In this document: positions 1 to 49,400 of the stretch, piece after piece | Layout of the letters: each line of letters opens with the position of its first letter | How positions within the stretch are numbered: position 1 is the first letter of the stretch | Origin: Vitrella brassicaformis CCMP3155 | Taxonomy: Eukaryota; Protista; Chromerida | NCBI GenBank assembly: GCA_001179505.1 | Contig: CDMY01000259.1 | Coordinates: 1-64,000 of the forward strand | DNA length: 64,000 nt | Direction of reading: 5' to 3' | Program-made: the position numbers and the translations under genes | The notes under the pieces: generated by a model | What the model was told of the DNA's origin: nothing | What the model saw: only the letters and a program-made list of their open reading frames with translations | The model's database searches: none

Positions 1-90
1 GCCACAGCACGCGGGTGTTCCAGATGGCAGCAGGCCGACTGATGCGATTGAAGGCGTTGCTCGCGTCCACCAGCAGGAGCCCCTCGGTCT
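1..90 (-). mobile_element. Fragment of a non-LTR retrotransposon reverse transcriptase (CRE/R2-like); continues beyond the left window edge
   Basis: Reverse complement of 1-88 translates as TEGLLLVDASNAFNRISRPAAIWNTRVLW. This matches the LLxD(A)xNAFNxxxR...W motif of non-LTR RT domains. It is too short to appear in the ORF track. Confidence 0.8.
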
Positions 91-153
91 TACTCACACG
101 CATCAGTGCAGACGGAGAGATACGTACGCATCAATGGCTTTTCCATTGTGCAG

Positions 154-965
154 GGCGTCTGTGAGCACAAGAGGGGCAAGATCATGGCATGCTATGAGCT
201 GGAGAGCGCGCGGTTCAAGGTGGGCGGCAATAAACATGCGCTGTGCACATTCTTCCTTGCCATTGTGTGTGTGCCTTCAGAAGCTGCGCGAGAGCCTGAT
301 GGCCGGTCCGAGCACTACCACTGCCGACTACACAGTACGTCCGTCTGCCCACTTGCATCCATAATCTTAAAGAAAGGCATTGTGGATGGATGTGTATTGG
401 TTGTGTCCTCCTTCAGGCTGTGGCCGTGCCGCCGTCGACGACCTCTGCTGCCATCGACAACCAGCCGACACCCAGCCTCCTGCAGCTCGTGCCCATCGTG
501 GCGCAGAAGGCGGCCTCCCCCCCCTCCCCCTCCCCCTCCCACTCACCCTCTCCCGCCCTCGAGCCGAAGTCGCGCGCCGCTGCCCCTGCTGCTGCAGCCC
601 CGACACACGACGCCACGCCACAGGAGCACAAGAGCACCCCGTACTCGCCCCCGCCACCCATCGCCCCCCATCCTCAGCCTCACCCCATCCGCCACGCACC
701 GACGCACGCAGCAGAGCAGCCGCCCCCGCTGGGCCACTACCGGCTGAAGGCGTCGGTGGCGGACTGGGGGGAGGGCGAGACTGGCTATTACGCCAGCCCG
801 CTGACGCAGTGGGACACCGCGTTTTGGGAGAGGCGGGGGGCCGAGTGGGTCGTGACCTGCAAGCAGCCGGCGGAGGATGTGGGCTGTTGTGTGAGGGCGG
901 CCAGGGGGGTAGCCAGGGGGGTGAGGAGCGCATATGCGCACGTGTTTATGATAGCTAATGGGTAG
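154..965 (+). CDS. Tandem-family protein copy 1 (5' part missing or disrupted): Pro/His-rich linker plus W/Y-rich C-terminal domain
   Basis: Phase-0 exons 154-219 (GVCEHKRGKIMACYELESARFK), 281-334 and 417-965, joined by GT-AG introns. The last exon ends GHYRLKASVADWGEGETGYYASPLTQWDTAFWERRGAEWVVTCKQPAEDVGCCVR...ANG*. Exon layout mirrors copy 2. Confidence 0.65.
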
Positions 966-1324
966 GGGCAAGGGTAGGGGTGTACAGGCGGGACGGTGCC
1001 CGTTGTGCTCGCGCGAGAGGAGGGAGAGGGGAGAGAGAGGGGTGTTGACTGGGAGATCGTCAGTATTTTGGTTTGGTTTGGCCTGGATGGGTGGAGGCGC
1101 GAACCGCACCGACAGTGCCTGTCTGCCTGTCTGCCTGTCTCTGTCTGCCTGTCTGCCTGTCTGCCTGTTTGTCCGTCTGCGTGAGCCTTGATGTCATGTG
1201 CCCTCTTCAACCGCATGGCCCGGTATATGCGGTCTGTTTGCGTAGAAGAAGGACCGTCGACACTCCGATCTGCATCAATGGGAGCCTGGGTCATTGGGAG
1301 AGAGCTTATGCTCATTGTGTGCAG

Positions 1325-2674
1325 GCGCACCCCGACCGGCGTGTCATGGAGGAGCATGACCTGATGGCGGAGGTGAATGCGGCAAAAGATACCCTCCTCG
1401 ACGATGAGGAGAGACACCAGTATGACCGCCGCAAGGTCAGCACACTACAGCCATACAGATGAAGAGATGCGCATTCATCTGCTTCGTGTGTTCCTTCGGC
1501 TGGCTGCTCAATGGTGCAGGGCATCTGTGACGCGAACCGCCATCAGGTCATGAAGTGCTGGACGAAGGAGTGCGGCTGGTTCCAGGTGGGCGGCAGACAG
1601 ATCAACACATCACATATGCACACCACACCCACACATTTTTCCTTTTCGTTGCTCGTTCCTTCAGACGCTGCGTGAGAAACAGACGCTGGTACACAGCAAC
1701 GCTGCCCAGTCGGTACGTAAGCGCTGCACCCGCCTGCACCCATAACTTTCGTGACGATGTGTGTGTTCTTTGTTGTGTTTCTGGATGGATGGATGGATCA
1801 GGCTGTTTCCGTGCCGCCGTCGACCAGTCCGGCCACTCAGCCCAAGATCCCCACACCCAGCCACCTCCAGGTCGTGCCCATCGTACCGCAGAAGGCGGCC
1901 TCCCCCCCATCCCCCTCCCNNNNNNNNNNNNNNNNNNNNNNNNNNNNNNNNNNNNNNNNNNNNNNNNNNNNNNNNNNNNNNNNNNNNNNNNNNNNNNNNN
2001 NNNNNNNNNNNNNNNNNNNNNNNNNNNNNNNNNNNNNNNNNNNNNNNNNNNNNNNNNNNNNNNNNNNNNNNNNNNNNNNNNNNNNNNNNNNNNNNNNNNN
2101 NNNNNNNNNNNNNNNNNNNNNNNNNNNNNNNNNNNNNNNNNNNNNNNNNNNNNNNNNNNNNNNNNNNNNNNNNNNNNNNNNNNNNNNNNNNNNNNNNNNN
2201 NNNNNNNNNNNNNNNNNNNCCCCCTCTCCCGGCCGCTCACCGACGTCGCCCGCCGCTGCCCCAGCCCCCACACACCACGCCACGCCACAGGAGCAGGAGA
2301 AGAGCACCCCATACTCGCCCCCGCCACCCATCGCCGTATCCATCGCCCCCCACCCTCACCCTCACCCCATCCGCCACGCACCGATGCACACAGCAGAGCA
2401 GCTGCCCCCTGCCGGATACTACCGGCTGAAGACGTCTGTGGCGGAGTGGGGGGAGGGAGAGACTGGCTACTACGCCAGCCCGCTGACGCAGTGGGACACC
2501 GCGTTTTGGGAGAGGAGGGGGGCCGAGTGGGTGACCTGCAAGCAGCCAGCGGAGGATGTGTGTTGTTGCGTGAGGGTGGCCAGGGGGGTAGCCAGGGGGG
2601 CGAGGAGCGCGTATGCGCACATAATGGCGATGGCTAGAGAATTCGTCGAGAGCTGCAGCCCCGACACGGCATAG
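1325..2674 (+). CDS. Tandem-family protein copy 2 with a partial J-domain (HPD motif); contains an assembly gap
   Basis: Exons 1325-1435 (AHPDRRVMEEHDLMAEVNAAKDTLLDDEERHQYDRRK, resembling J-domain HPD plus helices III-IV), 1520-1585, 1665-1712 and 1802-2674, all phase 0. The start codon and J helices I-II were not found. Confidence 0.65.
1920..2219. other. Assembly gap (300 N)
   Basis: Run of N inside a C-rich Ser/Pro-coding tract. Confidence 1.
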
Positions 2675-3382
2675 AGCTGCCGTTGTCGGGGTCTGCCAGC
2701 TGCTTCGTCGACGCCATCCCATGGGGCAAGAGATAGATAGAGTGAGCGGTGCGGCGGGTGCGTGAGTGAGGTGTGCGCGTGTGGTGTGGTGGAGGACGGA
2801 TGCAGCGATCTGATAGCTGAGAGAGGCCACACAGACAGACAAGACAGACAGACAGACAGACGACAGACGCGCCACGGCACGCCTAGAGAGCTGCCGTGGC
2901 GTGCCGTGGCGGCTGCCTTCCTTCCGTGGTTGGTCGAGCTGCCTGCTTGCCTTGTTGGACGGGTGGGATGCGTTCATGGGTGCATGTCATGGTGGCTGTC
3001 TCGTCGGTCTCGTTCGTTGGTGCATGGTGGGCGTACCTTACCTGCGGCAGACATGGATGGCGTGGAGGGGGCGACCGAGTGAGTGACACACCGGATTGGC
3101 TGACTGACTGACTAACTGCTGGACGTACTGCTGGCTGGGCGAGGTGGTGTTTGATGACGTGATGTGTGCGCTGTCGTGACGTGAGTGAGGTCGACTGTTT
3201 GGCTGCCAATTTGGCATGGCAGGTGAAGAGCAGAGAGGCGGGCGAACGGGCAGGCGGGCGGGCGATTGGGTGAGCTCTGTGTTGGCGGGAGGCAGGCCAG
3301 ACAGAAGGGGTGGCTGTGATGTTGTGTGGTGGGGTTGGTCGTCGGGCCCGGCCCGACTCGACTCATGAGCGGCGTTCGCGCC

Positions 3383-3862
3383 ACCCACTAGTGTCTGTTC
3401 CTTTCTGTCCTGATTAGAGGTGTTTTAAGCCAGCCATTTTGTGCACTAGCTATATAGATGAGTAGAGAAGTCTCCGGCCCTCTGTCTGTGCTGTGGCCAT
3501 TTCAATCGTATACCCACCGTACTTTCCTTCCTGGACACGACGACACACGGCACACCGGCACATATTCTCTATATCAATCAGGTCAGTCGATCACACACAC
3601 ACGGACGAACGAGTGCATCAGCATCTGGCTATATATGTGCCTATCTCCCCGTGTGTGTGTGTGTGTGTGTGTCTGTGTCATGTGACTTGCAGGTCACTGG
3701 TCAGGTCCTCATTGCCTAACGAAGCCGACGTATTCTGACGCCCTCTTCCTCCATCAACGCTCCACAAGGTACGTATGCCACACACATGCACCGAATATGC
3801 CTTCGCCTTCACGTGTCTCTCTTCGTGTGTGTTTATGCCATTGGTTGCAGATTTCCCTCACA
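3383..3862 (+). repeat. Dispersed repeat module B, copy 1 (exon/intron-like structure)
   Basis: Aligns by eye to 12956-13430 and ~11515-11890. Shared blocks include gccagccattttgtgc, tcag|gtcagtcgatcac, catgtgac(t/a)tgcag|gtcactggtcag and ccgaatatgcc...cttcacgtgtctctc. Confidence 0.85.
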
Positions 3863-3905
3863 GGCCGTCTCCAGCCCCCACGGGCCATGGGAACTAGACG
3901 CGATC

Positions 3906-4053
3906 CGCGGACCCACCGATTTCATCCTCCGTGACCTTGTGGAATGGTTGGCTGTCCTTGGAGCCCACGGTCCCATAACGAGTTGTGGCGAAGCTGAGAT
4001 CTGTTTCCCGCGGGTTGGCAATATCACGCCGATACTGCTGCGCAACGTCCGAG
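3906..4053 (-). pseudogene. Inverted copy of most of DNA-PKcs exon 1 and its donor site
   Basis: Reverse complement aligns with ~46431-46580: SDVAQQYRRDIANPRETDLSFATTRYGTVGSKDSQPFHKVTEDEIG versus SDAAQQYRRYIANPREADLSFATTLHGTVGSKDSQPFHKVTEDEIG. The ATG is absent. Confidence 0.9.
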
Positions 4054-4055
4054 TT

Positions 4056-6652
4056 GAAGGATCATCTATCGAGGGGTCCGCAAGAGGCCTTCCTGACGCC
4101 CCTGAAGGGCCAGATTGTCGAGTGGTATCCGTCACACACCCCCGCCACGTCCCCTGACTCCCTCATGTCTGCCGGCATGGGCGGGCCCTCCTCGCCCAGC
4201 AGCCGGAAGGACAGCTCGCCCAGTGCGGCCATGCAGCAGACACTCACGTCATTCTGCCCGCCAGAGGGGCTGTGGCTCTATCGCGAAGAGCAGGGGTGCC
4301 CCGGACCTGTCTTCTTCTCGACGGTGCTATGGGGACTGTCGCGGCGGGCCTACGTGTGCTGCCTGATGGTGTGGGAGCCGCGGGCATGGCCGTGGGATAT
4401 CGACCATGGCGAGATGCAGAGGAGCGGCTTGATCGACGGCATGGTCGCAGTGACGGAGGACTTGCTCGAGACAGCCCTGCGGGTGCCTCCATCGTCTATG
4501 TGCCGACGTGCCTGTGCTTCATGACCCGGCAGCCGCTGATCAGCTCCCTCAAGAGTGTCCTCTATGAGCTCTACCAGCTGCAGCAGAGGACCGCCAAGGT
4601 GTCCTTCCTGCGGCAGCTGCTCAAGACACCCACCCGGCCAGCCCGTCGAGTGACCACTCTTCTGCTGCTATTGAGAGCACCATCGGCCGTCTCGTCGTCG
4701 ACCTTAGCGGTGCTGGATTGGCCCGGCCGTCAGTCAAGCTGCACATCGGCATCGGTGACACACACCTGCGGGCGATAGATCTGCCGGGCGGTCGCAGCAA
4801 CGGCGGCCGGGAGCTGAGCTATCGGGCGCTCTTCGCGTGTCTGAAGCTGGACCGCATCGTCAACGTCTTCACCCTGCTGCTGCCGGAGAGGAAGGTGTTG
4901 ATGCTCTCGCGGCGGGTCTTTCTTCTGACCTATCTGGCGGAGCCAGTGCCAAGGCCGGACGGCCTTGGCGGTGGCCTTAATGCAGGCGCCGCCATCTCGG
5001 CCCCCACGCCCCGGTGTGGAGCTCGAGGACGCCATTCGTCCCGTCCAGATCATCTCCGGCGTGGCCCGTCGGAGCCGTACCACCGAGTCACCGCAGTTTG
5101 GCCGCTACCCCCTGCCTGCTGCCAAGGGTCCCCGCGCCGGTTCGTTGGTGTCGCTGGGCGAGCGAGACGAGCTGAAGCCGTTGGGAGAGCGCCATTTGTG
5201 GTGATGTCCATGGAGACAGAGGATGGCGACCAGGGCAACGGCGCAAAAGTCGTGCTGGAGGAGGAAGGTACGAGACCTACACACACATACATATGGCGGA
5301 GGTCATATCATCTCTTGTCATGCTCTCATGGCTGTCGTGTGTGTGTGCAGGTGTCGTGGGTTTGTGTCAGGCCGCCAGTGGGCCCTAGTCACTCGGTGAT
5401 CGACGGGCGAGGCCATCCGGCAGACCCATTGGTCACAGCAGCCCACGCACGAAGGCCATTCGAGAGGTACGCACGTATGACCACACGCAAAGGACGTGCT
5501 CATCTCGCGTGTGCACATACTTGTATGTCTCTGTCTGTGTGTGTATCTGTTGGTGTGTGTGTTTGTCTGTGTGTGTAGGTGGAGGCGATTGGCTGTCTGT
5601 CTGGCTGGCTCGGGCAAGTCATTCCTCCGGGAGTGCGTGCCTTCATCGGCAAGTCATTCCTCCGGGAGTGCGTGCCTTTCGGCAGCCCTTCTTCGCCACC
5701 ACTCCATCCCTGGTAAGTGAAACACAGCACGCGCAGACAGACAGAAAGACAGACCTACCTGCATCTTGGATGAATGGACGGGTGCATCTGTCTGTCTGTG
5801 TGTGGGATGTGTTTATGAATGCATTCAGGTGCCGTGAACGGCAAGCCCAGCACCACCGAGCCCCCCTCTGGAGGTGTGAGCGTAACGCCATGCCCGTGTG
5901 CAGACGACCAGTGGGACAAGGGCGCTCGGCTGGTGTCGCCACCACCGCTGCTGCCTCAAGGGCACGACGTGGTTGTGGGCAGTGAGATGGACGACGAGGC
6001 GTTCTTCGACGAGGCAGCGGAAGATATCATGGCGATCCTAGAGGACGCTGTCATGTCTCCACAGGACAAGACCGCAGCCTCCGGCAAGGCCGACAGTGCC
6101 AGCCGGCCGGCGAGTGTGGTCGACAAATGCGTGTCGCTGGACCTGAGTGAGGCGTCGCCCTCTGACCACGCCACACCCACACCTCCCCCAGCCATCCCTT
6201 ATGCGACCATCACCCCGGCCCCTGATGTCGCTGATGTGCCCACAGCCACCCCCTTTGACGACACAAGGAGACTGGCACCGGACGACGTGATTGAGGGAGA
6301 GTCACAGCAGCCATCGGCAGCTGTGCCGGAAGCGCCCAGACCCACACCCGTTTCAACTGTGGATGCTGCCACGAGCGCGGCGCCGGAGCAGGCAACGGTC
6401 TCGACAAGCGCCCTCGCCGAGCCGACAGAGGCGCAATCCATGGCGGTCGAGGGCCCCGACAACAAGCCTGTGCGGGAACTGACTCTTAAAGAGGTCGATC
6501 GGTTGCGTCTCGGGCATGAGGACATCGTTGTATCGAGACTGGGCGGCCTCCGCACCAGCATGTCGTTCTCCCTCCCCCCGTCTTCTTCCCCCCACCCCAC
6601 GGCGCTCCTCTTCATGCCGCGACGCCATGGCCTCTCCCGTGTCGCCATCTGA
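4056..6652 (+). pseudogene. DENN-domain (Rab GEF) pseudogene fragment
   Basis: uDENN-like LKGQIVEWYP...TSFCPPEGLWL...VFFSTVL...AYVCCLMVWE and cDENN-like VYVPTCLCFMTRQPL...LSYRALFACLKLDRIVNVFTLLLPERKVLMLSRRVFLLTYLAE. These lie in three different frames with no intervening introns. There is a 35-nt out-of-frame duplication at 5613-5678, and no start region. Confidence 0.8.
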
Positions 6653-7000
6653 CGAGGGCCAATCTGTGCAAAGGAATTCCTTTGATGATCTCACTGAGGA
6701 GCCCCCTGTGTACCAGCACGCCCCTGCTCCTACCGATCCGCCTGGTGATGACCAAGGGCAGCGGGATGCTGGGGACGGGAGGGCTAGCGGCGAGGAGGGG
6801 AACGACCCGCCAGACGATGTGCCCGCAGCGTCTGTGCCCTCTCCCCCGACGAGAAGCACCCCACCCACCACCCACCACCGACCACCCACCGCCACCACGA
6901 GAAGAGGCCCCCGCGCCGCCATATGTAGACAGACGGGGGAGGATGGCTGTTTTTTGTTTTCCGTCAGCGGCCCTACCCGTTGCCTTTTCCTCTCCTTTCT

Positions 7001-7111
7001 TTTCGTCCCTCCGTATGGTGCGGACACTGTTTTGTCGTATTCTTTTCGTCCCTCCGTAGGGTGCGGACACTGTTTTGTCTTTTTCGTTTCGTCCCTCCGT
7101 AGGGTGCGGAC
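7001..7111. repeat. Three tandem copies of a 43-bp-period hairpin-containing unit
   Basis: tttcgtccctccgta(t/g)ggtgcggacactgttttgtc starting at 7001, 7044 and 7087 (third copy truncated). Confidence 0.9.
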
Positions 7112-8479
7112 GCTCCCTTTTCGTTCGTGTGCGTGGGTGTGGTGTGTCGCTGTCTACTGCCCGTCTGTCTACTTCTTATGTGCGTCGGCGGTGTTCTCGT
7201 TGACCGAAACAATCGGTTGGTGGTGGTGGTGGTGGTGGTGCTTGTCGGGGGCGGGAGGTCGGTTGGTGGAGGGTGGGTGGATGGATGGATGGTGTCGGCC
7301 CGGGGCTGGCCATGGGTGTGGGTGGCCTGACGTCTGTCAGAGTGTCGGTGTAGACATCGGCATTGTCTGGTACTTTCTGGTTGCGTACTTATTTGTGAAT
7401 GACTGGCTGCCAGAATGGATGAATGAGGCCCATGCCTGCCCGTTGACTGACTGTGATGCAGCCAGCGTGTTGTGGGGGTAAGGGACTTGCTGGGGCCTTT
7501 GTCCGCGCAAGTGTCCGCCGTCAGAAGGCCACGGACGGGCCTTGCGGCTGGCTGGTCGACTTACTGGCCTCTCAGGGGCGCGTGTGTGGACGATATACAG
7601 TTAAGCTGTGGTCGCCGCGTGAACCTGGGATGTGCCACTCGAATGAAATGAGTGTGTTTGTTCTGTCTGGCTTGGTGGCTGGCTGCATCGGTCGGTGTGT
7701 GTGTCTGGATAGATGGATGGATGACAGACGAATTCACTATCATGTGGTGACAATCGTGACCCATGCTTCGTGGATGTGCGAGATGCGTGTAGAGGCGTGA
7801 GCGTAACGCCATGCCTGTGTGCATCCATGTCGACTTACTCCTACTGACTGACTGCGTATGTAATGTATTTTGGGTCCACGGCTCATTCGACTTACTCCAC
7901 TCACCCACCATGTGCTGTTTGGATGGATGTATAGGCTTGCCCCACTGCACCCACAGACTCCCTGACCTGACCCGACCTGTTCTCTAGACAGGCGTCCGTC
8001 CACAGGGAGAGGAGAACAGCCGTTTCTTTATCGTGTGCTTTGGCCTGAAACACTTCCTCCTGTTTGTCTGCACCAGCCAGATGTGTTCATGTGCAGAGAG
8101 ACGCAACACACACATACCAACCATCCACTGACTGTGTGAATGGCCACATGCCAGTGGATCCCTTTGTCATCCAGCGGTTTTGCTTAGCGCCCCGCGACAC
8201 GCCCACCCACTCAGGCACACACATGCCGACACGAAGCACAGCCTTCTCCTGCTGCGCAGGAGCACTGCTCTTTCCGCCGCTGTTTTTCGTCGCTGGCCGC
8301 GTTTTTCCAGCCTCCGCCGGACACCACAACTGCGCTTTCGGCCCATCAATCATCCCATCGACAGCTCCTTGTGCAGCCGTACCTGCCCTGACTGACATCA
8401 GGCATCCACATGCATCCTGCAGGGAGGTACCGACTTTACTCCGGGCTCTTTGCCCCCAGTCTATGGGATGGCGGCCCGC

Positions 8480-10142
8480 ATGCATTCGCTGTGCCTGTCT
8501 GGCTGTTTGTCTGTCTGTCTTGGTCTGTCTGTCTGTGCAGCTGCTCTGAAGGAGAGCCTCTTCAAGGAGAGCGACGGCCTGCTTCAGTCCATCCGTCAGC
8601 AGCACACACACGCTCTCACACACGGGTGCTCATCTCATTCACACGCCTTCTTGTTTGTCCACCCGGCCCACCGACGTGCTGCAGGCCAGAGTTGCGCTGA
8701 CAAGAGCAAGCCGCTGCCGGATGCTCGTCTGTACGGCCTCAACACGTGCGCCAAGTTCATATGGCGGTGCGGGAGGGACGCCGGGCTGCAGCACCACATG
8801 CCCGCCATACTGGTGGGCTGGTGGACGGGGCGGTTGACCGGTGCACTTCCAGCAGGCCCTGGCCATCCAGCTCACCTGATGGATTGATGTCCGCTCGTGT
8901 GTGTGTGTGTGTGTGTGTGCAGAGGAGCGGGTTTGGGTTGTTCCAGAAGGACGAGTCGAAGCGCGTCAAGAGGGCGGCGCTGTATCTCATGCTCGAGGTC
9001 ATCAAGTGCAACGCCAGGTGGGTCTGGGGTTCTGTGGGTGAGTGTGGGTGTCCACGCACAGCCAGACAGCAACAGGTACACGTGTCTTGTCTGGACTGGA
9101 TGTGTGTGGTGTTTGGCGGGTGTCAGGTGCGGCAGCCCTCTGAGTGCCCAGGAGATGGAGATCGACAAGCACATCGGCAGACTCATGGAGGAGCTCAAGT
9201 CGTTCAGGACCAAGATGGGCCCACAGGCACAGGGCGCCCTCTACGCTCTCTTCGGTGCGCATGGCACATCACATCCACACACCTCCCTCTCATGGACATT
9301 CAACCTGCCTCTGTGGTGTGTATGTGTGTGTTCAGCTGGCATGATCGACCTGTATGACAATCACTTCTCCCCCCAGCAGCTGAGGGACATCGCCAGCACC
9401 ATCAAGACGGTACGGTACGCACGAACCCACTCAGGGCATGGCTCTTCGTCCACAAGGCGTGCACCATGCATGTGTGTCGGTCGTGTGTGTCTTTCCCTGT
9501 CGCTGTGTGCAGGTTATGGAGTCCTCAATGTCGAATCTCTCCAAGGGCTTCGAGCCGTCGCTTATCGAAGGTGACTCAATGTAATGTCATCCCACAGAGA
9601 TAAGACACACCCACTGCTCGCCTCCTCGTCTGTGTCCATCAGGCGTCATGAAGGGCCTCGAGTCCCTCCTCCACAGGTATGCATGCTGCCTCCCCAGCCC
9701 AACACGCCGCCATGTGCATCCGCACGGACCTCTCCGTCCGTGTGTTTGTCTGGATGGGATGAAGGCATGCCGACGCCTTCTTCCCGGCCGACCAGCCCGA
9801 CCACGAGAGCCGCCAGAGGCTGTACACCTTCATAGAGGGCACGGCCAACTACGTGCAGGGGTCGGGAGGATCACTCGCACCCATGGTCGGCAAGCTAAGC
9901 ACGCCACACACAGATAGAGGCGCGAGGATCAGTCACCCTTCTCTCTGTGTTGGTGTGCAGAAAGCCGCCATGTCAGTGTTGCGTCGACACGCCCAGCTGT
10001 TCCGCGGCCAGCTGCTGGCCGAGCTGAGGGCGGTGCCGGCATACCGCAACAAGCGGCAAGAGGAGAGGCTGGCGGCGCGGGAGGCTGCCAAGCAGGCCAA
10101 TGCGGGTGAGGCTGCTGCGGCGGCCGAGGGACAGCCGGCGGA
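8480..10142 (+). pseudogene. Truncated duplicate of DNA-PKcs exons 2-10, introns included
   Basis: Colinear, high-identity match to ~46644-48300 including introns. All GT/AG sites are retained. Homology stops abruptly after EGQPAD, and the frame runs on to a stop at 10242. Confidence 0.92.
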
Positions 10143-11514
10143 TTGGCAACTGAAACGGCACACCGCCGGCCCTCAGCCGGACACTGACACACAGAGCAAC
10201 AGGCAGGCAGGCAGAAGGACAAGACAGTGTTTGAACACATGAATGGATGGTCTCTTTGCTCGCTTGTGTGCGGGGTGCGCATCGTTGCTGCCATGGTAGC
10301 CCATAGAAGCTATGTGCAATCCCTCCTGCAATGAACGGAAACCACCAGAAGATAAGATGCCACAGAACAAGACGCATCCATCCATCAGCCAGATTCCTTT
10401 CCTCGCCTGCTCTTCTGCGTGGCCGGCACTGCCCGTACCATCCCATCCCTCCACCTGCGTACCATTTGGCCTCCGACAGCCAGGGGGAGGGGGAGGAGGG
10501 GGAGTGTCGTCAGTGGGAGGGCGAGAGGGAGGGTAATTAACTGTGTAGGATGGGACGTACACACCATCCATTTGTGCCTTGCTTTTCAATTGTGCTGTCT
10601 TAGTTCAGCCACTCATGTTTGCTCATTCGATGACAGATGACAGATGACAGATTCATCCATCGTGTCGACGTACTCATACGTACATGGCTCCTGCGTCTCA
10701 CAGCCACAGACGAGCGACATGGCCAGCCTTTTGCAGCCTGGCCACGCGGCCTCATTGTTGGATATCCTCAGCCATCGAGCGGAAATCACTTGTGTTGTGG
10801 TGGCAGCAACGCCGTGGTGGCGCTTCTCCTTGGCGGCAGAGGCAAAGTAGGACGAGGGCACCTCAGACATCTTGCTAATGGGGCTTCAAATGGGGCTGCG
10901 AATGGCGAGAGTATTGATAATCAGATGTGTGGCTGCTGCCGACTCACATACAGGGCGATAGCATCGTGATGGCAAGAACCAGGCGTCCCAAGAAAAGGGG
11001 TGAAGAGAGAAAAATGTGGGCCGGAGTCGAGAATTTCGCGATGGAGGCGAGACGGCGATCCTTCCGAACCATCCCGAACCTCGATCGCCACACAGGTTCC
11101 AAACCTCCTTTCCGCTCATATTAGAGCACAGCTTCAGCCACCACAGCTCAATTCATTTTCTGACCGCAGCACGCGTGCTGGAATCCCAGTTGACGGTGGC
11201 ACTTGACGAAGCGACCGTGGCGGCGGCGTTAAGAGGCAGTTTCGCCAACAGGTACGTCAAGACACCGTTGGCCTTGACGGCTACACCGCATGCCTTGCCT
11301 TGCCCTCAGGCTGATAAGCCACGGTGAGGTCCCAATGAGTCGCACAGTGACGCAAAGGACCTGCAGTGGCCGCCGGTTCAGCTCGATTACGCCAGTTTCG
11401 CCGGCTGCTTTGCGACAAAGAGGAGCGGAGAGGGGAAACACGAGTGAGTCAGACACCATGTAGAATGGGCACTTCTTTGTGCAGTTGTGCTGCCTTGTTT
11501 TGCAGTCGAGAACT

Positions 11515-14500
11515 TCGCGACCAAGAAGTCGCGGCGCTCTGTGCTGCTGGCCATTTCGTCGTATAGTACAGTCCTCACTCATTCTGTACGCACCTGCATT
11601 GCTGCCCACAATGCACCGTCGCCCCCCGGTGGCCATCGTCAGGTCAGTCGATCACTCACACACAAGGCGAGCATGTGATGTGCCCACATCTCCCCGTGTG
11701 TGTGTGTGTCATGTGACATGCAGGTCACTGGTCAGATCCTCACTGCGTAAGGAAGCCGATCTATTCTGACGCCCTCTTCGTCCATCAACGATCCATAAGG
11801 TATGTGTGCCACACACATGCACAGCCGAATATGCCCGCAGCTTCACGTGTCTCTCTTCGTGTGTGTGTACCATGGCTTGCAGATTCCCAGTGCCGGCAAC
11901 GAAGCCAATACACTACTCATTTGTCCGTCCTGCACACACCGCCACCGCCATAAGGTGTGCTCATTTAGACCACGCAGAGAGTACCCACTCACTCACGTCT
12001 CTCTGTGTGCGCGTCATGGCTGCAGTTTTCCTCTGCCGATGCGCTGACCGGTCGGCGATCGTCCGCCCTCACGCGCACACACCACCAAAGCACCGGCGTG
12101 GCATAGAGCCGCCGTTGTCGGGGTCTGCTAGCTGTTTTGCCGCCTCCATGGCCAGAGATAGAGAAGTGGATTGGGTGGTCGTGTCTGTGTGTGTGGGGGG
12201 TGTTTTCTAAGAGAGAGGAGAGCGCGCCATGTGTGTTTGCCTGCATGTCGTTTGTCCGACAGTGCCTGCCTGTCTGCCTGTCTGCCTGCCTATTTATCTG
12301 TCTGTCTGCGTGAGCCGTGATGTTGTGCGTGCAGCCTTTTGCAGAGAAGAGGGAACTGCATTGGGCGGGTCAGTTGGTGGTGCTTAACCAGTGGATGTCT
12401 GTCTGCTTGATGGGTCAGGGTGTCTGTTTGGGGTGCTTTCTAAGGTGTCTGCTGCCTGTTCCGCCGCCGTCCCATGGCAAGAGATAGATAGAGAGGCGGA
12501 TTAGTTGGTGGTGGGCGTGCCTGTGTCTGCCACGGTGTGTGTGTTGGGGTGTTGTCACCAGAGAGGGGAGAGCGCACCTATCGATCTATCTATCTATCGA
12601 TCCATCGTTCGTGGTGCACATTGTCACCCTTGTTTGTCCGGCTGCTCGTCTGTCTGCTTTGTTGGTCTGTGTGTGTGTCGGGGGTGTTTCGTAAGAGAGA
12701 GGGAGAGCTGGCGGCCTGTAATGTGATGCGTACACCGGCTCGGCTGGCAGACAGACAGGCAGACAGACAGACAGGCAGAAAGAGAGTCGGTGGGTCGGAG
12801 GCCACAGAGAGGCCGTGGTTGCGGTTGTTGGGGGGTGGATTGTGGGGGCCCGGCTCGGTTTCATCGAGCGGCCCTTGCAGCCATCCACTATCTCACCACA
12901 ACCACACGCAGCCGTCAGAGATCGGATGGGTGGTGATGTAGTGGCGCCGTTTTGGCCACCAGTGTCTGTTCTTGTCTGTTCTGATTAGCGGTGTTTGAAG
13001 CCAGCCATTTTGTGCTCTAGCTAAAGATGAGTAGCGAAGTCGCGGCCCTCTGTGCTGCTGGCCATTTCGTCCTTATAGTATCGTCCTCATTCATTCTGTA
13101 CGGACCTGCATTGCTGCCCACAATGCACCGTCGCCCCCCGGTGGCCATCGTCAGGTCAGTCGATCACTCACACACGAACGAGTGCCTGAGCATCTGGCTA
13201 TGTATGTGCCTTTCTCCCCGTGTGTGTGTGTGTGTGTGTGTCATGTGACTTGCAGGTCACTGGTCAGTTTGCCATTGCATAAGGAAGCCCATCTATTCTA
13301 ACCGCCCTCTTCCTCCATCAGTACGATCCATAAGGTATGTGTGCCACATACATGCCAAGCCGAATATGCCCTCAGCTTCACGTGTCTCTCCTCGTGTGTG
13401 TTTATGCCGTTGCGTGCAGGTTTCCAATGTCGTTAACGAAGCCAATATGCTACTCGCCGTCCTTTTCGCACTCTGCACACGCCACCGCCACACTAAGGTA
13501 GGTGGGTGTGGGCGTCAGTCACACACACATGCATGCACACCGAAGTACCTGCTCATCTGTCTACGCTGTGTCTGTGTCTCTGTCGCTCAGCAACCCGATC
13601 GCCTGCCTCCTCTTGCCCACAAGTCTCTGCCACACGCCACACAAGCCGAGATCGTTAAGCCGAGGCCGTCTTAAGGGTCACTGTGTCTGCTAGGGGAACT
13701 CATGGTGGATGTCACACTCGTGGTCTTTTGTAAGTGGGTAATCACTGCGTGACGTGACGTGACGTGTCGGGTGGCGTCTGTGTATTTTTTGTACCTACGT
13801 GTGCGTGAGCCGTGATGTCGTGCACGTGTGTGCGGCCTTTTGCGGAGAAGAGGGAACCGTCGATACTCCGATCTGCATCGGGCGAGTCAGTTGGTGGTGT
13901 GGTGGGGGTGGATTGTGGGGGCAGATAGTCGGTGGGGCGGCAAATCGCTGTCTACATTTTATATTTGTTTGGCTGTGTCTCACTTGTGAACGCACCACTA
14001 AGGCCGAGACGAAGGTGAGGCGGCTGGGGGCAGACAGACGAGATCAGAGAGAGAATTCAATGCAATTCAATCTGTGCCCTCCTGTGTATTCCAGACTGCC
14101 ACGACCTGCAGCGTGACGATCCACAACGTACGTGTGCCCACGACACGGACGGCCGAATATACCCTCAGCTTCACGTGTCGCGCCTCCTGTGTATGTGCCA
14201 TTGCTTGCAGGTTTCCTCCCTCCCAGTGCTGTGGTGCCCAACCAGCCGGCCAACCAACCAGTAACGAAGCCAATATACGTACTGCTCATTCTTCCTTCCA
14301 CACTCTCTACACGCCGCCACCACCGTAAGGTACGTGGGTATGGGCGTCAGTCTCATGCACGCCGAAGTGCCTGCTCATCTCTACGTGTGTGTGTGTGTCC
14401 CCGACCCAATCGCCTCCTACTCTTCTGTCTATCACGCCCCCCACACACCCCACACACCACACGCCAAGCCAAGCCAAGCGAGAGAGAGAGAGAGAGACAA

Positions 14501-14960
14501 CTCACGTGGGGGAAACTCAAGCGTATGTGCGTGGGGAATGGCTGTCTGTCGTGTCACATGGGGGGATCTCACGGGAACAGATGACACACACGTGCCCGCG
14601 ATCGATGGATGGATGTCATTCGCTCGTGGCCTCCTGTAAGTGAGTAGTGAGTATGGATGGATGGATGGATGTGTGTGTTTGGTTGTGTCCTCTTTAGGCT
14701 GTGGCCAAGCCGCCATCGACCACCTCGGCCGCCGACCACCGCATCACCACATCCACAGCTAGTGGCGTCCCCCTCCCCCGCCCCCGCAGACACCACACCG
14801 CCCAGGGGAAGGCGTTGGCAGACCGCTGTCTACATTTTATATTTGACTGGCTGTGCGTCACTTCTCAATAAAGTCCCAAGAATGCATGGTGTGTATTTTT
14901 GGCACCTACGCTCCTGCACACTGACTCTGGTACTTACCTTCGGACGGACACACTGGGGAT
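11515..14960 (+). repeat. Degenerate tandem array of modules also found around the J-family genes
   Basis: Module B at ~11515-11990, 12956-13560 and partially ~14100-14400. The 3'-flank of copy 2 (ggcatagagc(t/c)gccgttgtcggggtctg) recurs at ~12100. The upstream module (tgcgtgagcc(t/g)tgatgt...gaaga...ccgtcga(c/t)actccgatctgcatc) occurs at ~1178-1275, ~12307 and ~13802. A relic of the last exon (ag|gctgtggcc..gccgcc(g/a)tcgac) lies at ~14699. Confidence 0.8.
13027..13301 (+). CDS. Candidate 57-aa spliced small hydrophobic protein within module B
   Basis: Exons 13027-13154 and 13256-13301 give MSSEVAALCAAGHFVLIVSSSFILYGPALLPTMHRRPPVAIVRSLVSLPLHKEAHLF*. The stop falls at the same position in the other two copies. 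Confidence 0.3.
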
Positions 14961-16153
14961 CCCACCCAATACAAGACAAAAAATTCACCATCAAGTGCCA
15001 GGTGGCGCATGAGCACACAAACACATCAGTCTCACGAACACACACACACACACACACACACACGGTCCGCACCACAACACATCAGTCTCACGAACACACA
15101 CACAACAGATCAGATCGAAGTTAGGTACACGGAACAGATCGCGTCCATCAACCACATCACTCTACTCAGTCAGTCAGTCAGTCAGTCCACAAACGAGAGG
15201 GACGGGCGAGCAGCATACACACATCGATGCACAGTGATCGAACCAGCGGCTCGAGGAGAATGACTGACAGGGCAGAAAGAAAGAGCCCCTCTATAGAACA
15301 CCCATCCATACCACCTAGCCTCTTCGACACCTTGAACTGCCCACAGCGGTGACCCACCACCCATGACGCGCCTCCTTCCCTTCTGGTGGAGCGTCCAGTC
15401 CACATGCGTCGCCATGCCTTGACCAGAGGGCTCGCCTCTCGAACTTTCAGAGGGTGGTGAGGCATTCTCTTCTGAGAGAACCAAGTATGGGGGACTCCAC
15501 ACAGAGAGCGAAAGAAATGCCTGCCTGCCGCCCCTGTACTCACCGTTGGCCGCGTGACGCGGGGAGGGCGACCCGACCCTGACGTGCCTCGTTTGCCCAA
15601 GCTGGCGGCACCCTCACTCTGCTGAGCGGCAGTCGAATAGCGAGGCCGACCGACATGCGCTCCAGCTTGCGGCAGCGTTGAATGGCACTCTGGACCTTGA
15701 CCTTTCTCTCCAGCATGTTTTCACGTCCGCCTCCTCGCGCGTCGCCCAGCTAGGGAGACCCTCTCCCTCTTGAGCCGGCCAAGCGCTGACAAAAAGAGGC
15801 GAGCAGGCAGGAGAACAGCCGGACGCGGAAGACCGAGGAGGCGATGGAGACGCCGCAAGAGCTCCAGAAGGCATAGGGGGACGGAATCACACGCAACCGC
15901 AACCGACCGAATCGGCTCGTCGAGAGATCTCGACAGATCTTGGAAGCCGAGATCTTTGCTGATACTTGCCAGGTGGGCAGCACGGACAACAGAGAACTCA
16001 GGGCGAGGGACTCAAGTCAAGCTCGCAAAAGATCAGCAGATTTCAGATCCTTGAGTTTCGTGGAAGAAAGCCCTCCAGCACTAGACTTAGGTGCCGATTT
16101 TTCATCGCCAGCAAGCGACAAGGCGTTTCGGGCCTGGCATCTGCAGATTTCAG

Positions 16154-46415: not shown

Positions 46416-49400
46416 ATGTCGGTGGTAGCCAAGCTCTCGGACGCTGCGCAGCAGTATCGGCGATACATCGCCAACCCGCGGGAGGCAGATCTCAGCTTCG
46501 CCACAACTCTGCATGGGACCGTGGGCAGCAAGGACAGCCAACCATTCCACAAGGTCACCGAGGATGAAATCGGTGAGTCCGCAGCGACAGGAGGAGGGAA
46601 AGGAGAGATCTGCTCGGCCATGGACACACAATGATGAGTGAAATGCATTCGTTGTGCCTCTCTGTCTGTCTGTCTGTCTGTCTGTGTGCGCAGCTGCTCT
46701 CAACGAGAGCCTCTTCAACGAGAGCGACGGCCTGCTTCAGTCCATCCGTGAGCAGCGCACACGCACTCACACACATACGGGTGCTCAGTTCATTCACACG
46801 CTTTCTTGTTTGTCCACCCGGCCCACCGACGTGCCGCAGGCCAGAGTTGCGCTGACAAGAGCAAGCCGCTGCCGGATGCTCGTCTGTATGGCCTCAACAC
46901 GTGCGCCAAGTTCATGTGGCGGTGCGGGAGGGACGCCGGGCTGCAGCACCACATGCCCGCCATACTGGTGGGCTGGTGGACGGGGCGGCTGACCAGTGCA
47001 CTTCCAACAGGCCCTGGCCTGGCCATCCAGCTCACCTGATGGATTGATGTCCGCTCGTGTGTGTGCAGAGGAGCGGGTTTGGGTTGTTCCAGAAGGACGA
47101 GTCGAAGCGCGTCAAGAGGGCGGCGCTGTATCTCATGCTCGAGGCCATCAAGTGCAACGCCAGGTGGGTCTGGGGTTCTGTGGGTGAGTGTGGGTGTCCA
47201 CGCACAGCCAGACAGCAACAGGTACACGTGTCTTGTCTGGACTGGATGTGTGTGGTGTTTGGCGGGTGTCAGGTGCGGCAGCCCTCTGAGTGCCCAGGAG
47301 ATGGAGATCGACAAGCACATCGGCAGACTCATGGAGGAGCTCAAGTCGTTCAGGACCAAGATGGGCCCACAGGCACAGGGCGCCCTCTACGTTCTCTTCG
47401 GTGCGCATGGCACATCACATCCACACACACCTCTCTCTCACGGACATTCAACCTGCCTCTGCGCGTGTGTACGTGTGTGTTCAGCTGGCATGATCGACCT
47501 GTATGACGATCACTTCTCGCCCCAGCAGCTGAGGGACATCGCCAGCACCATCAAGACGGTACGCACGAGCCCACTCATGGCTCTTCGTCCACGGCAGGGC
47601 AGGCACCATCCGTGTGTGTCGGTTGTGTGTGTGTGTGTATCTCTGTGTGTGTGTCTGTGTGTGCAGGTTATGGAGTCCTCCATGTCGACTCTCTCCAAGG
47701 GTTTCGAGCCGTCGCTTATCGAAGGTGACTGAATGTAATGTCATCCCACAGAGACACACCCACTGCTCGCCTCCTCGTCTGTGTTCATCAGGGGTTATGA
47801 AGGGCCTCGAGTCCCTCCTCCACAGGTACCTATGCTGCCCCCCCCCAGCCCAACACACAGCCACGTGCATCCGCGCGCACCTCACCGTTCCGTCCGTGTG
47901 TTTGTCTGGATGGGATGAAGGCACGCCGACGCCTTCTTCCCGGCCGACCAGCCCGACCACAAGGACCGCCAGAGGATGTACACCTTCATAGAGGGCACGG
48001 CCAACTACGTGCAGGGGTCGGGAGGATCACTCGCACCCATGGTCGGCAAGCTAAGCGCGCCACACACAGATGGAGGCGCGAGAATCAATCACCCATCATT
48101 CTGTGTTGGTGTGCAGAAAGCCGCCATGTCAGTGTTGCGTCGACACGCCCAGCTGTTCCGCAGCCAGCTGCTGGCCGAGCTGAGGGCGGTGCCGGCATAC
48201 CGCAAGAAGCGGCGAAAGGAGAGGCTGGCGGCGCGGGAGGCTGCCAAGGAGGCCAGCGGGGGTGAGGCTGCTGCGGCGGCCGAGGGACAGCCGGCGGATG
48301 ATGACGACGAGGACGACGCCAAAGACAGCACCATCATATTCGGTAAGGACCGATGCGATGCGGGAAGAGCGAATGACAGCGCATCCATCCGACCACGCCT
48401 ATCTATCGCTGCTGGCTGTTGCTGTGTGGCAGACAAGCTGCTGACTGGAGCGGCACATAACAATTCGGTAAGCAAGTGACGGACACCCCCATCGCCACCA
48501 GACACGTATACTGTCCTCCGTTCTCCTGTCTGTCTGTCTGCATCAGTTGTATGCCTTCGCATGTCGCGAGTGTCTAGAGGACATTCTCCGCGACATCTCC
48601 CGCTACCTGTCCGACCTCATGGACCACCAGCCCAAACCTGACGACACCGAGATCAAAGACGAGGAGGAGCACGGAGAGGCCGGCGCTGAGCACACGGGGG
48701 GGGCGGGTCGCAAGCGGAGGATCAAGCAGGAGGAAGAGGAGGAGAAGATCGCAGCGCCCACACAGTCACAACTCGCCCTGTAAGCTCGCTCCACCGGCCA
48801 GGGTGCGTATGGCAAGGCGGTCGGTGGGATGGGTTGGCTGTGTGTGCGGGTGATGCAGGTCGGTGAAGGGCGTGAAGGCCTTGGCGCGGGGCTACAGGGG
48901 CCGGCTGACCAGGTGCCACGAGCTGCTCGGCGAACAGGGACAGCTTCTGCCAGGTCAGTCCCTCGGCTTCTCTGCACCAGTGCCTTCCCTGTGTATGTGT
49001 GTCTTGGTGCAGAGAAGCACCTCAAGACGACGTTGAACTCTTGCATGGCGATTGGTCTGCTGGCGCCGGTGCTTGTTCGGGCGGACGGCACCGACTGGGC
49101 CATACAGGCGCTGCACCAAATACTCGACCTCATCCACGCGTAGGCGCGATGAACGGATGGATGGACGAAGTGTCTGTGTACGTGTGTGACATACCGGTGT
49201 GTCTGTCTGTCTGGCTGTTGATGTGTTGTAGGTTGGAGCCCAAGCAGCCAGACACCGTGGCCATGGTGAGACTTGCGCCGCGAACGCGAACACCACAGCA
49301 ATACCTCTGTGTCATCTCTTTCTTGGGTGCAGTACTTGCCTGGGTTCATCAAGGCCATGTCCACTCTCTTGCGGCCACTCACATCAGTACGTTTGGGCCC

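Follow-up and report, generated by a model that had tools for sequence, protein, structure and literature searches.

How fragments of several unrelated genes came to lie side by side within a few kilobases of the Vitrella brassicaformis genome is the question raised by this locus. Chromerids, to which this alga belongs, are free-living relatives of apicomplexan parasites. In the window, the 64,000-nucleotide stretch of DNA analyzed here, a preliminary description had delineated a mosaic of about 7.6 kb; its coordinates were reproduced by self-BLAST and a repeat finder, which place the mosaic at 3857-11524 (about 7.7 kb), and every piece was mapped (Table 1). The patchwork is genuine. Its material derives from at least four other genomic places, and its host site is an older local array of units referred to as module B. 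The pieces were duplicated rather than relocated, and the source loci are all still present.

Table 1. Segments of the mosaic, its flanking units, and the DNA-PKcs-like source segment (window coordinates; C, contig; L, copy of the dispersed repeat family).
Feature	Position	Strand	Source or basis
Module B, local-array unit, cut 6-9 nt past splice acceptor	3385..3857	+	Homology to B', B'', and B''' stops at gcag/atttcc
Filler F1, ~48 nt	3858..3906	.	No template found
Inverted exon 1 of the DNA-PKcs-like gene, codon 8 onward, with 10 nt of intron 1	3907..4053	-	Source 46436-46582
DENN-N: uDENN and start of core DENN	4048..4942	+	C33:190552-189629, middle of 705-aa exon of DENN-HAD gene
Filler, 25 nt, snap-back inverted copy of adjacent sequence	4943..4967	.	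Inverted-repeat scan
Family block a	4968..5458	+	One of its units forms a 44-nt minisatellite elsewhere in the family
Family block b, intron-like, follows truncated HAD exon in other copies	5459..5871	+	Family alignment
Templated patch, 32 nt	5871..5902	+	100% identical to L007, L008, L011, L012
DENN-C: end of 1175-aa low-complexity exon, same DENN-HAD gene	5899..6820	+	C33:183519-182554
Family blocks c-e	6821..8472	+	Includes 43-nt "hairpin" minisatellite at 6997-7111
Filler, ~8 nt, between family and DNA-PKcs intron 1	8473..8479	.	Alignment
DNA-PKcs-like gene from the final 51 nt of intron 1 into the middle of exon 10	8480..10143	+	Source 46643-48299
Unmatched sequence	10144..10799	.	655 nt, no other copy in genome
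Promoter/5' region and first 24 codons of a minus-strand gene	10800..11513	-	Longer paralogue C259:77300-78153
Filler, 11 nt	11514..11524	.	Sequence
Module B', 5' end ~80 nt shorter than in B and B''	11525..11918	+	Sequence homology
Source segment of the DNA-PKcs-like gene, from codon 8 in exon 1 into the middle of exon 10	46436..48299	+	Sequence match

Two pieces come from a DNA-PKcs-like gene located 38 kb downstream of the mosaic, in agreement with an earlier reading of them as an inverted exon 1 and a copy of exons 2-10 from a locus about 40 kb away. The source gene (46.4-64 kb) is DNA-PKcs-like on the basis of DNA-PKcs-specific and PIKK domains: PF19704 (DNAPKcs_CC5) matches at 59557-61113 with 30.3 bits (cut-off 25) and a FAT domain at 61967-62740 with 25.2 bits (cut-off 24.2). 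Exons 1-10 are assumed, from strand and position, to be part of the gene that bears these domains. The kinase domain of this gene falls outside the window. The source ATG is at 46416 and exon 1 ends at 46572; the exon 1 piece, a reverse complement that matches at 90.5% (14 differences in 147 nt), lacks both the ATG and a promoter. The second piece is a direct copy (91% counting gaps, 5% substitutions) that contains no stops and retains all eight internal introns, with every AG/GT intact. Source positions 46583-46642 are missing from the copies, so that the two pieces break only 60 nt apart, as would be expected if a single DNA-PKcs copy had later been split. In a search of the alga's own genome, the only other match to these pieces was the source itself.

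The DENN fragment noted previously was recovered by Pfam uDENN and DENN matches on window ORFs and refined to two pieces of one DENN-HAD gene, the intact source of which had been proposed as a check and was found on contig C33. DENN-N differs from that gene by 5.4% (48/895) and carries two frameshifting indels; DENN-C differs by 1.9% (17/921) and carries one frameshift and a 45-nt indel. Across the genome, DENN-N has no match beyond the copies of the DENN gene on C33 and C666. A fourth gene, situated 66 kb downstream, is the source of the promoter-containing piece that precedes the last filler. The breakpoints disregard gene structure, falling mid-exon in DENN and, in the DNA-PKcs-like gene, in the middle of exon 10, within intron 1, and at codon 8 of exon 1.

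An unclassified dispersed repeat, itself mosaic and present at 40 or more genomic places, accounts for about 2.6 kb of the patchwork. The pieces at 4968-5871, previously listed as unidentified and exon-like, are real and belong to this family, as does 6821-8472; the hairpin minisatellite reported within the latter was recovered as a 43-nt tandem repeat of 2.7 units. The stretch 8383-8479 was rejected as a filler, being mostly a diverged continuation of the family. Family copies share blocks with sharp common boundaries, one of which lies within a GT microsatellite and is joined to three different partners, and they carry gene fragments, namely a HAD piece always truncated at amino acid 139 and a DENN tail exon. 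The junction between blocks a and b (5458/5459) was seen only in this window. DENN sequence and the repeat family are also associated on C936 and C666, where the junctions differ, and this recurrence suggests that a combined block predates the arrival of the DNA-PKcs copy. About 13 Mb of this genome was assigned to "unclassified repeats" in the genome paper.

The flanks bear directly on how the mosaic arose. Module B is present in four local copies, starting at 3385 (B), 11525 (B'), 12956 (B''), and 14116 (B'''), which together make up an older tandem array whose gene units are of J-domain type. Module B was rejected as a 20-24-nt gene-boundary signal used across the genome, since two of its conserved motifs are present there only 2 and 4 times. 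By self-BLAST, B (3385-3856) matches 12956-13425 at 78%, and its final 192 nt match 11696-11888 at 87%. The cut in B, placed by the preliminary description at about 3862 and just after a splice acceptor, is supported by the loss of homology shortly past the acceptor ttgcag. Its reappearance near 11515-11890 also stands, but as one copy of four, not two. To call the mosaic bracketed by direct repeats is literally correct and yet misleading. Both B and B' have long been part of the array: the flanking B copies are 12-20% diverged, compared to 2-10% for the inserted pieces, and K2P distances are 0.13-0.22 among array members and 0.02-0.10 for the insertions. Because B and B' are more diverged than the cargo between them, the pair was not created by the insertion and is not its footprint.

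Microhomology analysis of the junctions, another check suggested at the outset, revealed overlaps of 0-6 nt or short fillers, including templated and snap-back ones. Five junctions have overlaps of TCCG(A)G (J3), GGC (5458/5459), TGCA (5899-5902), 1-2 nt, and 0 nt, the 6820/6821 join being blunt. Because some junctions have little or no microhomology, they do not single out one repair pathway. The 32-nt patch is templated by a position in four family copies that corresponds to window 7793-7824, and the snap-back filler forms a palindrome with 16-nt arms (4942-4957 and 4960-4975, 88% complementary) and a 2-nt loop. For F1, no template of 13 or more nucleotides was found in the window or in the other loci examined, and a genome search that allowed up to three mismatches located its 32-nt core only once. 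No mosaic junction recurs elsewhere in the genome.

Pack-type or Helitron-like capture had been proposed as one of two mechanisms; with no terminal inverted repeats (TIRs), target-site duplication, or MULE, it is unsupported, whereas the other, template switching or break repair, fits the junctions. The reported lack of TIRs and Helitron ends was borne out. An inverted-repeat scan of 3600-11800 yielded only microsatellite-type or chance arms, with none at 3857 or at 10143-11524, and the exon 1 copy accounts for the sole long inverted pair in the window. No target-site duplication of about 8-10 bp is present in the flanks (gcagatttcc upstream, gaagtcgcgg downstream); the only repeat flanking the block is the B/B' pair (about 390 nt, 12-20% diverged). 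A six-frame search of the whole genome for the MULE transposase (PF10551) gave 0 matches, and the own-genome search found no cargo shared by several transposed copies. The DNA-PKcs copy shows neither intron loss nor a poly(A) tail, and its retained introns point to a DNA-level copy rather than a retrocopy. An Rfam scan of the window returned no match. The idea of a subtelomeric duplicon was rejected, since telomere repeats are absent from the window and from all other loci examined.

The patchwork appears to be dead, or pseudogenic, and to have been touched later by gene conversion. The DNA-PKcs copy and its source differ at 9 synonymous and 18 non-synonymous sites (pN/pS 0.59), which gives no evidence of constraint on the copy and is about the value expected for a neutral copy paired with a constrained source. 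Indels that are not multiples of three likewise indicate neutral decay of the DENN pieces. It is important to note that a splice-intact, truncated gene copy, as this locus illustrates, need not be functional. Gene conversion is demonstrable at 8911-9274, where the DNA-PKcs copy has 2 differences in 364 nt, compared to 6.3% elsewhere; the only source-identical stretches, of 87 and 246 nt, lie on either side of a mismatch at 8999, within 8911-9245. Divergence between pieces and sources is heterogeneous (1.9% to about 10%), and conversion blurs these values to the extent that they are unreliable as ages or as a guide to the order of events.

Considering these observations together, we think it reasonably likely that the patchwork consists of non-functional, DNA-level duplicates joined by error-prone double-strand break repair or template switching, probably in several steps. 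The joining would have combined end joining at 0-6 nt of microhomology with snap-back synthesis and short fillers copied from a template. In the shortest history that we infer, a DENN-plus-repeat pseudogene block would already have been in place when a 1.86-kb DNA-PKcs duplicate (46436-48299) became attached to it by way of TCCG microhomology at 4048-4053. The block and exon 1 would then have been inverted, with one break in intron 1 and the loss of 60 nt, followed by neutral decay of the copies and short-tract gene conversion with their sources. Some features argue against this explanation; breakpoint 6820, for one, coincides within 1-2 nt with the DENN/HAD junction on C33 (C33:182553), which random breakage does not predict.

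That the mosaic, or its core at 4968-8472, is instead the cargo of a non-autonomous Helitron-type element, with the repeat family as the element and the fragments captured by rolling-circle transposition, appears improbable. Helitrons do exist in this genome: Helitron_like_N gives 14 matches (best, 180 bits), DUF6570 and Rep occur on C239, and Woo et al. 2015 (Supplementary file 2) list a Helitron total of 18,147 bp. The wide dispersal of the family, its gene fragments, and its sharp shared boundaries, together with the roughly 2.6 kb that it contributes to the interior of the mosaic, follow the pattern of gene-capturing transposons, and one family copy lies 1.2 kb from the Helitron on C239. 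C239 is, however, the only contig with a Helitron Rep that also holds a family copy, and apart from that copy no Helitron locus matches the window; the C239/C314 Helitron, which represents one Helitron family, has a 24-nt 3' end with no window match at up to three mismatches. Three long family loci (C445, C973, and C936) lack LTRs and TIRs, five aligned family 3' ends are staggered with no common end, and the boundary with three partners is a GT microsatellite. When long ORFs near family copies were searched with Pfam for a transposase or a reverse transcriptase, only DENN and HAD fragments appeared. The DNA-PKcs piece is confined to this locus and DENN-N to it and the C33 and C666 genes, and the mosaic edges have neither 5'-TC nor CTRR-3', nor a terminal hairpin.

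Another alternative is the formation of the whole mosaic in one replicative catastrophe, a chromoanasynthesis-like series of MMBIR/FoSTeS template switches at a broken fork in the B array. The segments were copied rather than moved, with one of them inverted; the contig itself carries three of the templates within 66 kb; several junctions have microhomology, and the insertions are short and templated. We nevertheless consider a single event unlikely: DENN-N and DENN-C differ in divergence from the same C33 gene (a disparity that gene conversion could mimic), one junction is blunt, and the DENN-plus-family association on C936 and C666 suggests an earlier block. A misassembly, with repeats joined into a chimeric contig, is very unlikely to be the origin. 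The assembly was built from short reads only (Velvet k=75, SSPACE, Gapfiller, IMAGE), the interior holds multi-copy repeats, and the locus lies 3-12 kb from the scaffold start, near a run of Ns at 1920-2219; but there are no Ns within 3000-12000, and de Bruijn misjoins require about 74 nt or more of shared sequence where these junctions share 0-6 nt. Each piece also has private substitutions and indels that set it 2-20% apart from every other assembled copy, and therefore was not built from reads of those copies; the 87- and 246-nt source-identical stretches have copy-specific sequence on either side. Ten ORFs that span junctions had no exact match in a sequence collection, a result uninformative on the junctions.

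More generally, the locus provides an example, mapped junction by junction, of gene-fragment duplication and stitching in a chromerid. A bolder and rather doubtful reading is that the approximately 40-copy composite repeat could be the trace, in Vitrella, of a duplicative process of fragment shuffling that has yet to be described, which would recombine with genes at recurrent block boundaries and yield both dead mosaics such as this one and at least one apparently intact fusion gene, DENN-HAD on C33. The blocks include one with the HAD exon, always cut off at the same point, and the C33 fusion point corresponds to window 6820. The composite repeat and this shared breakpoint may open exon shuffling through break repair to testing in the lineage.

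The mosaic by itself is an ordinary kind of genomic scar, well documented and not a recognizable jumping element. It resembles processed pseudogenes in comprising promoter-less, truncated, decaying copies, but every intron is kept and there is no poly(A). With Helitron and Pack-MULE capture it shares a mosaic of unrelated gene fragments in one block and a related dispersed family that carries fragments; here, in contrast, the main cargo is single-copy and the ends of the family copies are staggered. The nearest counterparts are complex segmental duplications assembled through non-homologous or microhomology-mediated repair, as in duplicon patchworks, MMBIR/FoSTeS-type complex rearrangements, and "filler DNA" at repaired breaks. 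The locus is like such repair-built segmental duplications in its copied fragments from multiple loci, one of them inverted, its disregard of gene structure, its 0-6 nt microhomology, its templated and snap-back insertions, and its later decay and gene conversion; it is unlike them in that it lies in a chromerid alga, within a tandem gene array, and is built in part from a repeat of about 40 copies.

Based on self-BLAST, a repeat finder and searches of the organism's own genome (72,700,666 bp in 1064 scaffolds), the pieces located in the preliminary description were recovered at the same coordinates, and their arrangement fits duplication at the DNA level, with end joining or template switching, followed by neutral decay and gene conversion. 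Apart from one blunt join, the junctions carry microhomology, fillers or a patch, in keeping with break repair or with the template-switching patchwork that had been proposed as one alternative. None of them recurs elsewhere in the genome.

Pieces of the mosaic and flanking module B copies in window order, with matches and the junction to the next piece
Piece	Window	Match	Junction to next piece
Module B	3385-3856	B' 11525-11918; B'' 12956-13425 (78%); B''' 14116-14424	48-nt filler (F1), no template found
Exon 1 copy (DNA-PKcs-like)	3907-4053	reverse complement of 46436-46582, 90.5%	TCCG(A)G common to both parents
DENN-N	4048-4942	C33:190552-189629	25-nt filler with snap-back inverted copy of adjacent bases
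Family a, b	4968-5871	dispersed repeat family	a/b: GGC shared, deletion junction confined to this locus; b/DENN-C: 32-nt patch matching a different family region at 100%, with 1-2 nt at one join and TGCA at the other
DENN-C	5899-6820	C33:183519-182554	blunt
Family c-e	6821-8472	dispersed repeat family	filler of ~8 nt
Direct DNA-PKcs-like copy	8480-10143	46643-48299, direct	
Single-copy stretch	10144-10799	no second copy in genome-wide search	
24-codon gene piece	10800-11513	C259:77300-78153	11-nt filler
Module B'	11525-11918		

Both DNA-PKcs pieces claimed earlier, an inverted exon 1 and exons 2-10, were recovered by self-BLAST. Plus-strand ORFs downstream of the source segment score above the Pfam cut-offs for DNAPKcs_CC5 (30.3 bits against 25) and FAT (25.2 bits against 24.2). 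In the DNA-PKcs-like source gene, the ATG was placed at 46416, with exon 1 ending at 46572, and exons 2-10 were placed from AG/GT signals and frame continuity. The inverted piece runs from codon 8 and includes 10 nt of intron 1, with neither ATG nor promoter, and the direct piece extends from 51 nt upstream of exon 2 to the middle of exon 10; their source breakpoints are just 60 nt apart (46582 and 46643). All acceptors and donors of the direct copy are intact, and its exons carry no indels and no stops in 280 codons. Divergence from the source is 3.2% in exons and 6.9% in introns. Codon differences, counted by script on the exon chain, comprise 9 synonymous and 18 non-synonymous changes (pN/pS 0.59), which would be about the expectation when a neutrally evolving copy is set against a source under constraint. 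Intact splice sites and an open frame do not demonstrate function. A 364-nt tract spanning an intron (8911-9274 versus 47057-47420) holds 2 differences, compared with 6.3% elsewhere, which we read as a tract of ectopic gene conversion with the source 38 kb away.

The DENN gene fragment described earlier comprises two pieces of one gene on contig C33, to which the search for an intact DENN source also led. DENN-N matches the interior of an intact exon of 705 aa that encodes uDENN and DENN domains (own-genome search), and DENN-C matches the end of a 1175-aa exon. Because both window pieces start and stop mid-exon and contain indels that are not multiples of three, they are pseudogenic. Truncated DENN copies on C666 and C936 are each followed by repeat-family pieces, at junctions different from those in the window. 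The C33 gene (182.4-190.7 kb, minus strand; loci L021/L028) is an apparently intact DENN-HAD fusion. Its low-complexity 1175-aa exon ends ...CVCFDW before GTAAGT; together with DGTVVDS at the beginning of the following exon, this yields a complete HAD motif I (FDWDGT) across the splice, and a HAD ORF follows. The DENN-side breakpoint at window position 6820 corresponds, to within 1-2 nt, to C33:182553, where DENN yields to the repeat family's HAD block, and this transition is itself a block boundary of that family. The shared point would mean either that breaks recur at this site or that both sequences descend, by deletions, from a common DENN-HAD-family ancestor. In the former case, the intact fusion gene may owe its origin to the process that made the mosaic.

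The last piece of the mosaic is a copy of the 24 codons that open a minus-strand gene, together with the region upstream of them; a longer paralogue of this gene lies further along C259, the contig whose first 64 kb make up the window. On the minus strand of 10613-10870, the duplicated promoter and 24 codons (MSEVPSSYFASAAKEKR...) are continued by unique sequence, which predicts an 85-aa chimeric ORF.

The preliminary description had the mosaic bracketed by direct repeats. B and B' do flank it, but these repeats predate the insertion. In a four-way alignment, homology of B ends 6-9 nt past the acceptor ttgcag, where the other three copies run on. K2P distances are 0.13 for B and B' (alignable part only), 0.22 for B and B'' and 0.14 for B' and B'', versus 0.02-0.10 between inserted pieces and their sources; the B copies are thus older array members, and an insertion footprint is rejected. 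Positions 1-3400 and 11900-15000 form a local array with units of ~1.5-1.7 kb (modules A and B), within which 1073-1459 gives a weak, sub-threshold DnaJ match, and two further module B copies lie on C314 (32.5 and 45.7 kb). The module B motif AAGCCAGCCATTTTGTGC (3427-3450 and 12998-13021) is similar to the spliced-leader core of dinoflagellates and perkinsids; with just these 2 genome occurrences, the likeness is probably a coincidence.

The shortest history that we infer has three steps. A DENN-plus-family pseudogene block would have been in place beforehand; a contiguous DNA-PKcs duplicate would then have been joined to it via the TCCG microhomology; and the block with exon 1 would have been inverted, with one break inside intron 1. 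Origin of the whole mosaic in one replicative event is less likely: DENN-N differs from C33 by 5.4% and DENN-C by 1.9%, and the DENN-plus-family association has other junctions elsewhere. According to Woo et al. 2015 (PMC4501334), the assembly was built from short reads with Velvet (k=75) and processed further with SSPACE, Gapfiller and IMAGE. An artefact is unlikely, since junction overlaps of 0-6 nt are far below the assembler word length and each piece has differences of its own. The only N run lies at 1920-2219, and 3000-12000 is free of N; G+C across the window is 55-64%, and introns are short and GT-rich.

Transposon capture of the Pack-type or Helitron-like kind, also suggested earlier, was not borne out. 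The mosaic edges have no TIRs, no short target-site duplication and neither TC nor CTRR, and MULE PF10551 has no match in the genome. Helitron_like_N has 14 genome matches, and Helitrons total 18 kb in Vitrella (Woo et al. 2015, PMC4501334). One Helitron of at least 9.6 kb, whose minus strand encodes DUF6570 and Helitron_like_N, is common to C239:16950-26563 (L036/L037) and C314:12414-21999 (L041) at 88.6% identity. Its shared 3' end reads ...CAATAGTTGTC, which differs from the canonical CTRR and was not found in the window. The C239 copy lies 1.2 kb from a repeat-family copy; C314 has no family match, and none of the other contigs with a Rep match carries a family copy.

The repeat family itself occupies at least 40 places on more than 30 contigs (own-genome search), its copies being mosaics of shared blocks. 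It contains two minisatellites, one of 44 nt and one of 43 nt, the latter being the hairpin minisatellite reported earlier. Its fragment of the DENN-HAD gene's HAD region ends in every case at residue 139 of the C33 HAD ORF, which argues that a single truncated composite was amplified. Copies with this fragment include L015 (C456:3-8 kb), L013 (C882) and L027 (C973), and C456 has three in tandem. Identity to the C552 copy is 98% over 6821-6960, then 89% over the next 340 nt. Assignment of the family as a transposon is not supported, since three long copies lack LTRs and TIRs, long ORFs around the copies encode only DENN and HAD fragments and no transposon protein, 3' ends are staggered between copies, and a recurrent block boundary falls within a GT microsatellite, where it is joined to three different partners. 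In these sequences, the family behaves like segmental duplicates that continually recombine.
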